DNA of 64,000 nt from Adineta vaga (taxonomy: Eukaryota; Animalia; Rotifera): the NCBI GenBank assembly GCA_021613535.1, contig CP075495.1, positions 2,542,001-2,606,000 on the forward strand. Reading direction: 5' to 3'. Made by a program: the position numbers and the translations under genes. The notes under the pieces are model-generated. The model saw nothing but the letters and a program-made list of their open reading frames with translations, did not search any database and was not told the DNA's origin. Numbering within the stretch: position 1 is the stretch's first letter; each line of letters opens with the position of its first letter. Shown in pieces: positions 12,694-29,467 of the stretch.

Positions 12694-13608
12694 CAGCAAA
12701 AAGCAATAGTAGATAGTACACACACACATTGACTGTCACACAGTCAGCAGCACCATTGTCGTCGCGGAAGACGAGACATGAGATAAATAGATAGATAGAT
12801 AGATATATTTAGAGAGAAGAGAACGAACAAGGACTGTCGTGACGCATGCACAACTAATATTATCACTAGTGAGGAAATAACACGAGATTTTCTTTATCTG
12901 TTGTATTTTCAAGTCATTTCTGTCGAGAGAAGATATTTTGTATGATTTCATAAACTACTGTCGAAACGTGTTTTTTTTTCCTTCCCTTTCAAAGTAATAT
13001 TGGTTTCTCACGCACATCAGACGATTAGATTATTGAAGGAAAATATTTTTTTCTCCTTGATTACATTACATTTTGAAAAGAAGAAGTTTTCCTGATGAAA
13101 TCAGAGTAGAAACACATATTTCAAATATCAACATTGAAATTTGAGATTGTCGATGAACGCAAGAGAAATCGATCTTTATAAACGGATTTTTTTTAAAATC
13201 TTATCCAAAACACCTTTCTTCTAGAAAACATCATTATTATTATTATCATCATCATTATTATTCTTGATGAACTATTTTTCTTGTCGACTACAGAGCAGCA
13301 ACATCTAGAAATAATAAAAGACGATCATTAAAAATTGGAATTTTTATCTGTCCAATAGGAAATATTTCGATAGAAGAATTAATTAAAACTTAAATTTATC
13401 TATAAAACGAATGCAAGTATTTAACGACGGTTTAGATTGAATAGATTAATAAGAAATCATAGATTTTAATTAAGAATATAAATCTAAACATATTTGTTTC
13501 ATTATAGGTTTGTTCAACAGTCACAATTTGCAATTAAATCAATTTTTCTCCTTACTTTCCCATTATCTTATCCCTTAACGTTTTATTCATAACAAATCTT
13601 AGTTCACA

Positions 13609-23127: not shown

Positions 23128-24675
23128 ATGTCGAATCTTCTCTGTGAAGATGATGATTGTAATCAACTAATTGTTGCTAAATGTATGCATTGTGATCAGC
23201 ATTTATGTTTAAAATGTTTAACTCGACATCAACAACCGATCGAAACACAAATTTGTCAATTAACAAATGATATGAATAAATTATTATCCTTATCATCAGT
23301 AAATATCAATAATAACCAATCAAATCATCCACAAATTCATGCAAATAAACAATATAAACTAGTTTTAGAACAAATTGATCAATGGGAAAAGACAATGACA
23401 GAAAAATTAAATGATTTAGTTTCACGTGCACGTCAATCATTACAAAATTCATTCGAACAACTTTCATTTGAAATCGAAGAATGGTCAACAGAAAAACAAG
23501 TTGAATTACAACAATTATCCGAAGAGATTGGTAAATATTTTCCTCTTTTTTTCCAAAGAAAACTTCTTTCTATCGAAATCATATTTCATTTAGAACAATT
23601 ATCATCTGAAATGAACGATAAATCAGATATTCGAATGAAAGTTGATACATACAATCGACAAATACAAAAATCTATGAAAGAATATGAATATGCACATGTT
23701 GAATTAAATCTTATTAATACTGATTTAATCCTATTTCCATCGACAGCATTACAATTATTTCATTTATTTGAACATTCAATCAATTTTGATCTATCATTTA
23801 TTCATGATCCAGCTCAGATTTGTTTTGATGCATCTGTAATATCATCATCATCAACATCTTCATCACCATCGAATTCTTCTATACGTCGAGAGAAAATGTT
23901 TTTACCAAGTGTTTTAGTTAGTTCACAAAATCGTATTCTTCTTTTTTCCAATAAAACTAAACAATTATATATTTTTGCAACTAATGGAACATTAATCGAT
24001 CAATTTACTTGGGATCATAGTGATATCGTTGACATCTGTTACGATTTCTGTTCATCAACATTTCTCGATGATTTCTTTTTTGTTTTATCAACCAATGGAA
24101 GTATCTATTTATTAGAATATCATGTAGATCAACATACATATACATGGTCAAAAATGATTGCCGTTAATAATCAAACATATTACACACAAATCTTATGTGA
24201 TTCAAAATTATCTTATTTATATTTATTTATGTCAAGTAAACATCGACTTGATCAATGGACAATTAATCCAACAAAACGAAATCTCATTCATTGTTCAAAT
24301 CAATTGATTATAACGAATGATCATGTTGAACATTTATGTACATCAGATCAACAATTAGCTTTGTTATTACGTGATAAACAAAAAGTTTTAAATTATCGTA
24401 TTGAATTACGACATTTTACTGATTTACTTGTTACAATATGTTCTATAACACTCGATCGATTATCAAGACCAATGAAACTATTTTATGATAATCGTCATGG
24501 TTTTATTTTAGCTCATGGAAATCAATTATGTTCATTTGGAAACGATGGAGAAATGATATCAAAACGTACTTTCGAAGATATTCAAGAAATTAAACGAGCA
24601 ACATTTTGTCAACGATCCACTTGTGCTATTCTAACAGATAATGAGCAACTCTTATTTTATATACTTTCGAAATAA
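23128..24675 (+). CDS. B-box / coiled-coil / beta-rich C-terminal protein (lineage-expanded TRIM-NHL-like family)
   Basis: C-x4-C..CMHCDQHLCLKCLTRH B-box-like motif, then coiled coil and beta-rich C-terminus. Probable stop-free 63-nt intron at 23531-23593. Confidence 0.75.
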   Translation: MSNLLCEDDDCNQLIVAKCMHCDQHLCLKCLTRHQQPIETQICQLTNDMNKLLSLSSVNINNNQSNHPQIHANKQYKLVLEQIDQWEKTMTEKLNDLVSRARQSLQNSFEQLSFEIEEWSTEKQVELQQLSEEIGKYFPLFFQRKLLSIEIIFHLEQLSSEMNDKSDIRMKVDTYNRQIQKSMKEYEYAHVELNLINTDLILFPSTALQLFHLFEHSINFDLSFIHDPAQICFDASVISSSSTSSSPSNSSIRREKMFLPSVLVSSQNRILLFSNKTKQLYIFATNGTLIDQFTWDHSDIVDICYDFCSSTFLDDFFFVLSTNGSIYLLEYHVDQHTYTWSKMIAVNNQTYYTQILCDSKLSYLYLFMSSKHRLDQWTINPTKRNLIHCSNQLIITNDHVEHLCTSDQQLALLLRDKQKVLNYRIELRHFTDLLVTICSITLDRLSRPMKLFYDNRHGFILAHGNQLCSFGNDGEMISKRTFEDIQEIKRATFCQRSTCAILTDNEQLLFYILSK

Positions 24676-24882
24676 AATTTTAGATTGTTTCTTTTCTGAC
24701 ATAAAGATTGTTCATGAAAAATGTTTTCCAACACGGCTTTTCATGCTTGTTGGACGATAATGAATTTGATTTATTCGTTGAATAAAAATCATAGCAAAAA
24801 TATATCTACATTGATAGTGTTTCATATAACAAAATCAGGAGAATGTGAAGTAAAATAACTTGTATTAAAAAAATAAAAATTT

Positions 24883-25867
24883 CTAGGACGAGAACATATC
24901 ATCGAGAAGACTTTGAGACTCGGGTGTCATTGGTGCTAAATCTGTATTATGAAAGAATTGATCAGAATTAGAATTTGTTTCATTCAATTGATCTTCATTG
25001 TCATCAGAAAAGGAAGAAGAAGAGACAATAACAACACTAGGTTTCGTTGGTAATGGTACATGCTTGATTTCAACAACATTTCCTGTCAATCGACGTTCTT
25101 GATCTTCGTTGTACAATGCTAAATTTTTCAAAACGAATGATTTATCATCATCAATCATATGTAATGGACCAAACTTTGTAATAAGTCGTTCACGTTCCTA
25201 TAAATATACTCATTCGTTTTGATTGTTTTCGAGAAAGAAAATAGCTGAATCATCCGATGATTTACTTGTATCATCAATTGATCATGGAAATGTTTTAATT
25301 GTCGTTGAAATGCAAAATTTGGATCAACTAATGTTCGTACACCTCGAAGACTATTGATTACATCAGACCATGATACACCAGTAATTGTCATTAAATAAAT
25401 ACAAGCTATCGATGGACTTCGACTTTTACCTTCCACACTAAATTAAATCAAAGCTAATGAATAATTCATTTGTTTTTCGTAGACATACCAATGTATGAGA
25501 ACTTTGCCTTGATTAAGACGAGCATTGTGTATAAAATCATTACATTGTGCAGTATATTGTAATAAATCTTGCGAAATATGATCTTTAGCAGGAATTAATA
25601 GATATTGTCGGTGCTAGAACAAGGCAAAGTATACTTTGAATACGGATATCATATTCTACTTCATTTACTTCAAATGGACTAATTGGATTCTTTTGTATTG
25701 AAATAACATGTGTAATACCAAATTCATCTAATACTTTTCCTTGTCGAGCAACGAGTGCACTGGTAACATACAGACCGGATGCAACCTAAACGAAAAAAAA
25801 CAAACTCCTTCTGAAAATCATTTTTCTACAATAGAATTCTTTCTACTTCGCTCATTCCTTGACCCAT
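24883..25867 (-). CDS. Atypical dual-specificity phosphatase, DUSP22/DUSP15-like
   Basis: MGQGMSE N-terminus (myristoylation-type, cf. MGNGM), ITHVISI, FIHNARLNQGKVLIHCVEGKSRS P-loop, R..VDPNFAFQRQL. Confidence 0.88.
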
Positions 25868-25933
25868 TTTGATCGCTGTTGATTATTCTCTTAACATCTA
25901 GAAAAACAAACAGTTTTGAACGTTTTTATTCTA

Positions 25934-27439
25934 TCAATTAATCGCTTTTTCAAATTCTTCATCGGTACGTTGTTCAAAAGGCGTATTTAAATCTAATTCC
26001 TCAGGAAACTTCAATTTCAATCTTTCTAATGTTTCATAAAAGTATGGAAATGGTCGCGCTTGATAATGAACAATAGCTGGTTGTCGTCGATATTTTTTCG
26101 GAAGATTGAAATCAGTTAGATGTAAATGTAATGGACAGGCAATTTGTTGACCATAGAGATCAAGTGCTAGACGAATATGTTTAGTCAATTGCTACAAAAG
26201 GAAAATTGAATTAATGAAACAAAAAAAGGTCATTGAAATCCTTTGAACTAACTTGTTTAGCTGGATAAATTTCATGTTTAATTGGATTGATATACATCGG
26301 AATACCACCGACAGATTTGACTCGATTCCAATATTTGTGATCACCGAGTAAAGGAGCACACTGACGTAAACAATACAGTTCAATGAAATCCCATGTGCCT
26401 AAAAAGAATATTTATTAAATATTAGAAATAAAATGAAGAAATTCTCATGTATTCGTACATGTCGTCGTTTTAAATTCAACAAGAGCAACTTTTAATTCAT
26501 CATTAATTGACAATGTTCGATGTTTAACAGTTCCATTATAAACCCGACCATTTTTAATTGCATTCGAACTTGCATCAAAAATTTCATAGGACTAAAATTG
26601 GAATTTTTTTGAGTTTTGAAATTTCTTTCAGAAAAGAAATCATTCTTACTAAATATTGTTCATTATAAAGATGTCGTTCAACTAACATTTCATGAGAATC
26701 TTCTAATTTACGTGGAATTAATGTTGTTATACCACTAAAAATAGATCTAATGATTCAGATTAAACTTAATCTTTGAACAAAATTTGATTACATACTAAAA
26801 GGTTAAATATGGTTCTTTCATTTTCCGAAACGAACGCATTGCTGTACTTTTTATATTATCATGTAATTGAGCATTTTGAGTATAGATGAGTAAACCACTT
26901 GGTTCACTAAAATAGAATTCAATTTCGATAAGAAAAGAAAAGTTATATCTTACTTCGGTGTTCGTATACAAGGAAAAAAATGATCCCATTTAAGAGCTGA
27001 ACGAAATTGTGGCATATGATATTGAATTGTACAAGAACTGGAATTCGATAGAGTAGAATTTTGTTGTTGTTGTTGTTCTACTTCTTCATCTTCATTAGTT
27101 ACTTGTGTTTTTCTATCCCATGTTTCATCTGAATGAAGAAAAGATCATATCAAAAAGATGAAAATCGATTCGTCATATTTATACCAAGAACCATCACACC
27201 AGGTGGTTTATTAAATACAATAATTTTTTCATCATGATGAACTATATTATTTAGAATGCATGTCACTAAATCTTTTGGTTGACGAATTGGATTTGCTTGC
27301 AATAAATAATGAACATATCTTTGATTAGTTCGAGAAAATCTTATACTAAAAATAAACAAAGTTATTGTTTTCTTTCAACAAGTTTAATTCTTTTTGCAAA
27401 ATATTACCCATGAGAAATAAACCGATTGAGAATATTCAT
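25934..27439 (-). CDS. RluA-family mitochondrial pseudouridine synthase-like protein (RPUSD3-like), catalytic Asp absent
   Basis: IVFNKPPG motif I, motif II reads PCIRTPNEPSGLLIY, APLLGDHKY, PLHLH near the C-terminus. Confidence 0.78.
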
Positions 27440-27681
27440 GTTGATAAATAAATGAAAATATGAATTAGTTTAAATCAAACGATATGTTGTTTCGTACCAA
27501 TCATATTAAATTTAGTTACCATGCAATATCCTATATGTCGCCACGAGTCATTGTAACACAATCGTCTTGATCCTTTACTATAAGTTGTCTTAAAAGATTG
27601 TACTTTTTAATATTTATTTATTTATATGTTATACGAAAATATACTAACAAATAAAAAGTCATGAATAACGGCTAAGTAACA

Positions 27682-28977
27682 TTACTGAATTTGATATATG
27701 CTAACACCCTGTTCTGTTAAAATTGCTAAAAATTGATCTTCTAATTGTACAGCATAAAGTGGTGAAGATTGATAGAAACACTTTTGTTTAATTTCTCCTT
27801 GTGTTGTTATATGAAGAAGACGATTGTCAGCAAAATTCACAATTAACCAACCTTTCTCGTTCAATGAACAACATGAAAGAATATTGATTTTCTCATCAAT
27901 CTGTAATGATATAGTCCAAAGTTGATTGTATGTTTCCGTACATCGTAAATCTAAACGTCTTTCATTAGTCAATTGATTTAATATAATTAAAGCTAATGTT
28001 TCATTATTCGAACATTTCATATGTTCAATATATTCATTTTCTGTACAACAAATTTGTTTTCGTTGAAAAGAAAATGTGTTTTTACCAATTCCATATTCTT
28101 CAATTGTTGAATGTAATTTTTGTGTAGTTAGAAATAGACTTTTATCTGAACAAGTACAACAATACCATGATTGATTTATTTTTGAAAAGACTTGCTGTTC
28201 TTTTTCAATATTCATTGTTTGTTCATCCAAAGTAAATATGTCATTTTCTGCTATGATAATAAACTTTCCTAGAGTATTTGACGTACACATATCTCTAATA
28301 CAACCATGAATCCATGATATTTGTTTAATTAAATTGAGATTTTTATCAAATAAACATAAATATTCTTGGTGGCCAATGAGAAAATATTTCGAATTATTAG
28401 TCATAACAATACAATCATCTTTTGAGAGAGATTTTCTTACTAATTCTGATTGAATAGTTGAATAGAGATTAAAATTAACTTTGGATTTATCGAATTGAAT
28501 AAGATCATCATTGAGAATTAATGGTGGAATATCTAATTGAAGATTTTCATGTAATGTTTCATTGAATTCACGTTGAATTGCATTAATCGCTGCTTTTAAT
28601 GATTGAATTTGTTGGTGAGTTGCATTTTGTGCACGAATTAATTGAACAATTTTCATTTGAATCCATTCGAGAACTTGACGATTTTGATTGAATTTGTCAT
28701 CGTGAATTTTCATTCTATCAAGTTGTTGACATTTTTTTTCATAATATGAATCAATTGTTTGGTGCGATTGATGTCGCCATTGATCCAATTGTTGACGATA
28801 GTGATCACGATATAATTCCGACACATGATTGACTTCATTCGTTAATTGATATAATTCCGAAAGATAAACTTCATTATGATCTTTTATATGTTCAATACAA
28901 TAATTTTGTTTACAACAGTAACATAATACTCGAGCTAATCGTACACAATTTGTTATCGTACAAGAATGCTCAGACAT
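27682..28977 (-). CDS. B-box / coiled-coil / beta-rich C-terminal protein, intronless
   Basis: MSEHSCTITNCVRLARVLCYCCKQNYCIEHIKDH, QQLDQWR coiled coil, IRDMC and LDLRC motifs shared with the 23128 gene. Confidence 0.8.
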   Translation of the reverse strand: MSEHSCTITNCVRLARVLCYCCKQNYCIEHIKDHNEVYLSELYQLTNEVNHVSELYRDHYRQQLDQWRHQSHQTIDSYYEKKCQQLDRMKIHDDKFNQNRQVLEWIQMKIVQLIRAQNATHQQIQSLKAAINAIQREFNETLHENLQLDIPPLILNDDLIQFDKSKVNFNLYSTIQSELVRKSLSKDDCIVMTNNSKYFLIGHQEYLCLFDKNLNLIKQISWIHGCIRDMCTSNTLGKFIIIAENDIFTLDEQTMNIEKEQQVFSKINQSWYCCTCSDKSLFLTTQKLHSTIEEYGIGKNTFSFQRKQICCTENEYIEHMKCSNNETLALIILNQLTNERRLDLRCTETYNQLWTISLQIDEKINILSCCSLNEKGWLIVNFADNRLLHITTQGEIKQKCFYQSSPLYAVQLEDQFLAILTEQGVSIYQIQ

Positions 28978-29467
28978 TATTTTCAATGAGAAACATATGA
29001 AAAAGTTTTAAAGAAGCGCATACATATTTATATGACGTGTTATTTTTCTAATTATAAATAGTATAGACTTCACTGTTTTTTTATATGCTTAGTATGATTT
29101 TTCTGTGGCATCTAATAAATTCATGTCATGTTAAGTAGTTGGTATTTTTTCTCTGATGATTCATTTCTTATCAACACGACGTACTGCAATAAATAATCAG
29201 TTACTAAATCATCAGGACTATATTTTTCAATAGAATGTGATTTAAAAAAATTCGTTTTTACAATTAATGAATGATCTTTTTGATAGCATATCGAGCTTTG
29301 ATTTTATTCTCTAATATTAAATAAATTTATTTTGTTCATAGATAAAGACAATGTGACACATACAATTGACAATCTACATATTAATTAATTAAACAGCTAG
29401 ATTGAATTAGAAAATAAGAAAAGTAAAATGTCATGCATAATCATTCTGTGTTGTTACTCCTCATAAT

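Follow-up and report, generated by a model that had tools for sequence, protein, structure and literature searches.

[quoted passage not shown] 2006, PMC1488885). The SL1-type operons of Caenorhabditis elegans, a minor class, likewise show little intercistronic sequence or none, and use the general SL, with an AATAAA in the upstream cistron (PMC1488885). The SL2-type operons use a specialised SL and have an intercistronic region of about 100 nt. Within the Gnathifera, the superclade to which rotifers also belong, operons of the chaetognath Paraspadella gotoi were called where genes on one strand lay within less than 250 bp of each other and SL evidence was at hand (PMC12460157). For rotifers themselves, operons are stated not to have been reported (PMC7986045), the 2025 chaetognath study names rotifers among the trans-splicing and operonic lineages but holds no rotifer operon data (PMC12460157), and we found no later report of rotifer operons in the searchable literature.

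Here we analysed a 64,000-nt stretch of the bdelloid rotifer Adineta vaga (hereafter the window), which lies in a 100.8-Mb assembly of six contigs. Two co-oriented genes occupy its minus strand, an RluA/RPUSD-like gene followed by a DUSP22-like gene, and the distance from the stop of the first to the ATG of the second is 66 nt. The reading that we favour, with a probability of roughly two in three, is that the pair forms a two-gene operon, fed mainly from the upstream promoter and resolved by SL trans-splicing.

The upstream cistron, I4U23_006572 (P0061), spans 25934–27439 (−) and encodes 354 aa in nine exons, from the ATG at 27439 to the stop TGA at 25936–25934. The downstream cistron, I4U23_006571 (P0044), spans 24883–25867 (−) and encodes a DUSP22/15-like phosphatase of 249 aa in five exons (25867–25847, 25785–25669, 25613–25489, 25437–25266 and 25197–24883); our own five-exon reading was identical to the annotated gene. 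Its product matches Pfam DSPc (5e-26), the closest solved structures in the PDB are human DUSP22 (1.2e-28) and DUSP15 (1.3e-26), and both the active site HCVEGKSRS (pattern HCxxGxxRS) and the N-terminus MGQGMSE (MGxxxS motif) are conserved in orthologues. To judge from its sequence, the product is a member of the DUSP22/DUSP15 atypical dual-specificity phosphatases, and its N-terminal MGxxxS would allow myristoylation. Exons were used singly as queries, the full-length proteins being database entries (P0018, P0044 and P0061), and no second copy of the RPUSD-like or the DUSP gene was found elsewhere in the A. vaga genome, where both are single-copy.

The identity of the upstream gene is a more tentative matter. 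A Pfam search with its product returned no match, the single PDB match was RPUSD4 (E = 0.008, over 49 residues), and among the annotated orthologues (P0058–P0063) one source names the Rotaria sordida protein ‘Pseudouridine synthase RsuA/RluA-like domain-containing’. A very divergent RluA/RPUSD-like gene is a plausible assignment that these weak matches suggest, and the label ‘RPUSD3-like’ in the original prediction is likewise plausible but weakly supported. RluA-family enzymes have the catalytic motif HRLD...SG. At this site, P0061 and its bdelloid orthologues read IRTPK/N-EPSGLL (about 26960–26890, −), and the product of I4U23_006572 may be a non-catalytic pseudouridine-synthase-like protein. 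A third collinear gene, encoding 434 aa with a cysteine-rich N-terminus, lies at 27682–28986 (−), 242 nt upstream of the pair, so that the 434-aa, RPUSD-like and DUSP genes form a collinear block; its position is kept in L017, L018, L022 and R. sordida L036, where the products are 425–429 aa long. We treated it as a separate unit, since the ATG of the RPUSD-like gene has no adjoining acceptor.

The spacer between the two cistrons, read on the minus strand, opens behind a double stop (the TGA and then TAG at 25933–25931), directly 3′ of which stands AATAAA (25930–25925), which may serve the upstream mRNA as its poly(A) signal. The pyrimidine tract CTGTTTGTTTTTC with its TAG (25913–25898) is the predicted trans-splice acceptor, the joint falling at 25898/25897. 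A mini-uORF (ATG TTA AGA GAA TAA, encoding MLRE; 25897–25883) opens right at the acceptor, and the main ATG of DUSP (25867–25865) follows 30 nt past it. All of these elements, including the four-codon uORF that starts exactly at the acceptor, lie where the original prediction had placed them. Its further claim that the gap contains no donor also stands: we found no convincing splice donor between stop and ATG, where the GTs (CGTTCA, TGTTTG and TGTTTT) are unlike the donors of the neighbouring introns (GTAAAT, GTAAGA and GTATGT). The window has two copies of the 12-nt acceptor core YTTNTAGATGYT, against 0.26 expected. The other copy, TTTCTAGATGTT, is at 13300–13311 (−) and is also preceded by a pyrimidine tract.

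Relatives of the locus were found by two routes, 14 with the upstream gene's last exon and five more loci by alignment with DUSP exon 2. At every genomic locus that reaches the junction, the two genes stand in the same order on one strand. Ten bdelloid lineages keep the stop, the pyrimidine tract, the TAG/ATG of the mini-uORF and the main ATG within 39–77 nt (66 nt in A. vaga and 39–77 nt in the nine others), which is the conservation of pair and spacer that had been proposed as a check; the lineages listed with the tight pair are A. vaga, R. sordida L036, L017, L018, L020, L022, L024, L026 and L029. The tight pair therefore spans two bdelloid orders, with A. vaga in the Adinetida and R. sordida (68-nt spacer) in the Philodinida. 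Across lineages, the acceptor (pyrimidine tract and TAG) lies 15–47 nt past the stop, the main ATG lies 24, 30 or 36 nt past the acceptor (in ATGGGNCAAGGNATGAG), and the uORF that begins at the acceptor has 1–5 codons. An ATG directly 3′ of the acceptor opens a uORF in eleven lineages, in ten of which the contig includes the main ATG as well. In Didymodactylos carnosus only the gene order is kept: the spacer is about 310 nt, including a 10-N gap, and an acceptor-like TTATAG abuts the main ATG.

In a multiple alignment, TAGATGYT was conserved, whereas the flanking introns and the remainder of the spacer were not alignable. Because the acceptor and the ATG occur at the same place in ten lineages with surroundings that cannot be aligned, and because the core is over-represented, we argue that the layout of the spacer is not due to chance. 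The AATAAA is another matter. The signal named in the original prediction is present in A. vaga, but between stop and acceptor it recurs only in L021 (NCBI GCA_024509735.1), several other lineages having AATAAA downstream of the acceptor instead; at such AT-rich composition, about one in ten 66-nt stretches would contain it by a rough estimate, and taken alone it is weak evidence.

Two further features of these loci were observed. In all of the lineages listed above, the uORF ATG shares the reading frame of the main ATG, from which a stop separates it, and the uORF of L021 is nothing more than ATG-TAA; the in-frame ATG may be left over from an in-frame insertion of 8 codons, or it may be functional. 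In the lineage of L025, L026, L027, L029 and L034, intron 1 of DUSP has been lost, and genomic contigs, as long as 117 kb, run from exon 1 straight into exon 2.

We then turned to RNA. The 23-nt SL exon sequence of rotifers was taken from PMC3795323 (Table 1), and the A. vaga genome (G000) holds 42 SL RNA genes with an identical exon sequence followed by a GTAAAT donor, in agreement with the bdelloid trans-splicing that the original prediction took as its background; no Rfam family matches the rotifer SL RNA. The DUSP exon-2 alignment search led to a full-length Rotaria protein (P0018), a word search with this protein yielded near-full-length proteins on short contigs, and a cluster look-up added two more. 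Near-full-length DUSP proteins on such short contigs indicate that the contigs can only come from spliced RNA. One of them, L033 (JGI 3300030740, 963 nt, environmental), is a DUSP mRNA contig from which all introns have been removed. Its 5′ end consists of GG and the complete 23-nt SL (GGCTTATTACAACTTACCAAGAG), joined exactly to ATGTTTAAATAA, and the main ATG lies 24 nt past the joint, so that the mini-uORF is present in an SL-bearing mRNA. Blastn aligned L033 with five genomic loci from the shared AG onwards, and none of these loci has the leader. L032, from a second sample and 99.4% identical to L033, begins with the final 6 bases of the SL, joined at the same point. The predicted addition of the SL at this AG was thus found in an environmental orthologue, whose protein is 77% identical to that of A. 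vaga, and we consider SL trans-splicing at 25898/25897 in A. vaga itself to be very likely.

The contigs had other features as well. The last 90 nt of L033 are the reverse complement of 804–893, a fold-back (880–963) that is an assembly artefact and leaves the 5′ joint unaffected. L032 continues for about 330 nt past the DUSP stop (790–1098), antisense to the end of a convergent ORF (23128–24675, +; about 24630–24700 in the window), which suggests either that the convergent 3′ ends overlap or that sequences were merged in assembly. In a third, more distant lineage, L030 and L031 give a spliced DUSP mRNA with a 71-nt leader starting GAG, a start too short to be called an SL. A composite pattern in which 14 SL bases are followed, after a gap, by the DUSP start gave no match in a metagenome contig collection; since L033 fits the pattern, this blank means only that such transcript contigs are absent from that collection.

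As monocistronic genes are also SL trans-spliced, an SL on the downstream mRNA would not by itself be sufficient to call an operon. Unresolved polycistronic RNA was found in two Logan contigs of 99.1% mutual identity, L029 and L034 (from the runs SRR22100213 and SRR22100216), both of which contain a fully spliced RPUSD-like ORF, an unprocessed 77-nt spacer and a fully spliced DUSP ORF. The exon blocks of a genomic relative, L027, are about 90% identical to them and are interrupted by introns that the two contigs lack. The dicistronic pre-mRNA that had been predicted is in this way represented in orthologues, by assembled contigs rather than single molecules and in a lineage other than A. vaga. 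A search of the protein collection with the spliced RPUSD ORF returned no monocistronic RPUSD transcript contigs, and a DUSP protein tree did not resolve the placement of the RNA-bearing lineages.

Candidate promoter elements were sought on both sides. The motif GTGGCGACAT (27535–27544, −) lies 105 nt upstream of the RPUSD-like ATG, and as GTRGCGACAT it precedes the orthologous ATG in A. vaga, L017, L022, L025–27 and R. sordida L036. Its extended form GTRGCGACATC has 53 copies in the A. vaga genome against 12 for the reversed control, an approximately four-fold enrichment that makes it a candidate transcription-factor site. An inverted CCAAT box, ATGATTGGTAC (27494–27504, −), lies 56 nt upstream of the same ATG; six lineages preserve TGATTGGYA, at −55 to −87, and it can be read as a putative CCAAT/NF-Y site. 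Both motifs, shared by five to six lineages, are candidates for a promoter role, and their combination occurs at two sites in the genome and is not a common module. Conserved non-coding motifs were found upstream of the first gene only. Within that gene, the last intron is not conserved in the multiple alignment, and where codons specify the same amino acid, identity at their third positions was 0.65 in the last exon and 0.55–0.59 in its last 30 codons, compared with 0.72 in the penultimate exon. Since synonymous identity in the last exon is not above that of the penultimate exon, the coding sequence gives no sign of buried promoter elements.

These observations bear indirectly on the possibility that the pair consists of two overlapping but independent units, in which transcription of DUSP would start within the upstream gene, towards its 3′ end, and a short outron would be removed by trans-splicing at 25898. 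The dicistronic contigs would then reflect a minor degree of read-through, or overlapping RNAs that had been merged in assembly. Operons with internal promoters do exist in C. elegans, and much of the SL trans-splicing in other animals takes place on monocistronic genes. Moreover, contigs are no proof of single molecules: an assembler could merge overlapping transcripts that have about 31 nt in common, a low level of read-through would suffice for contig continuity, and the spacer of about 310 nt in D. carnosus leaves room for a promoter. In some lineages, however, the stop is just 15 nt from the acceptor, and a DUSP promoter of its own would consequently have to sit in coding sequence or in a short intron. 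The unconserved last intron, the last exon without extra constraint at synonymous sites, and the restriction of conserved motifs to the region upstream of the first gene all speak against such a promoter, as does the tight adjacency kept across two orders. We regard independent overlapping units as the most serious competitor, albeit one clearly less likely than the operon.

Far less room is left for two other explanations, both of which concern the acceptor itself. An acceptor without a donor of its own could pair in cis with any upstream donor, such as the GTACCG at 25968 named in the original prediction, and an upstream non-coding or RPUSD exon spliced to 25897 would give an alternative transcript from a shared promoter, or a fusion. 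Yet the orthologous mRNA carries the SL rather than an upstream exon at the joint, the dicistronic contigs contain no such splice, a junction with 25968 would shift DUSP out of its frame, and GTACCG is not conserved; cis-splicing is accordingly disfavoured and very improbable. The remaining explanation is chance packing in a compact genome, with a functionless AG and tract and with DUSP transcribed from within the spacer. The AT-rich sequence, in which an AATAAA comes as often by chance as estimated above, lends it some support, but the acceptor core persists in ten lineages while its surroundings drift, the expected count of the core is well below one per window, and the acceptor is used for SL addition in L033. 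A functionless acceptor is refuted by this joint, and we give chance packing the least credence of all; even together, cis-splicing and chance account for only a small fraction of the probability.

Taken together, the operon reading leads to the following model. RNA polymerase II would start at the region of GTGGCGACAT and the inverted CCAAT box and read through both genes. The resulting precursor would be cis-spliced in both ORFs with its spacer intact, as seen in orthologues, and the general 23-nt SL would be joined at the AG equivalent to 25898/25897, again as seen in orthologues, to form the 5′ end of the mature DUSP mRNA. In A. vaga, this mRNA would consist of the SL, 30 nt and the ATG, the first three bases of the 30 nt opening the conserved mini-uORF. 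The upstream mRNA would end at or just before the acceptor, with the AATAAA at 25930–25925 as its putative signal in A. vaga. Little or no intercistronic RNA would be left, by analogy with tunicate and C. elegans SL1-type operons, and one precursor may give one or the other mRNA. A bolder extension, which we offer as a speculation with rather low odds, is that bdelloids have tunicate-type operons in which the poly(A) and trans-splice sites coincide, each precursor yields one mRNA, and the mini-uORF gates translation of the phosphatase, for example during recovery from desiccation. If this is true, the AUG of the gating mini-uORF is the first base after the leader.

The pair is probably an operon, and its layout is new to the rotifer literature, as far as the papers searched go. 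Three lines of evidence come together in this one pair, namely conservation across two orders, a complete leader joined where predicted, and dicistronic RNA, and by virtue of this combination the bdelloid pair shows two of the three features by which the best operons of Ciona were judged. It argues that operons should be allowed for in bdelloid gene models, in the assignment of promoters and in studies of expression, and it is a data point on whether operons arise wherever SL trans-splicing evolves.

The likeness to short-spacer operons of nematodes and tunicates that was noted in the original prediction can now be made more specific, the tunicate and C. elegans SL1-type operons being the closest known kinds; we think it probable, to the same degree as the operon itself, that the bdelloid pair belongs to this class and is resolved by the general SL. 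An SL2-type operon was rejected: L033 carries the general SL and all 42 SL exons are identical, and the stop-to-acceptor distance of 15–47 nt differs from the longer intercistronic region of that type, with which the pair shares the co-orientation of its genes, a precursor that is polycistronic, and trans-splicing after 3′ end formation. The chaetognath operons resemble the pair in having no operon-specific SL, but they come from a genome-wide study of another phylum with unrelated SL sequences (PMC12460157). Compared with C. elegans SL1-type operons, A. vaga has the same upstream AATAAA in an independent lineage, and mutually exclusive processing is a conjecture here. Compared with tunicates, the bdelloid pair likewise has a very short spacer and a general SL, most bdelloid lineages also lack the canonical AATAAA that A. 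vaga has, and the same types of evidence apply, namely dicistronic RNA, a downstream SL and an unusual genomic structure (PMC1488885). It differs in its phylum, Rotifera, in that a complete absence of intercistronic DNA would be a conjecture here, and in the conserved mini-uORF with which the downstream mRNA begins.
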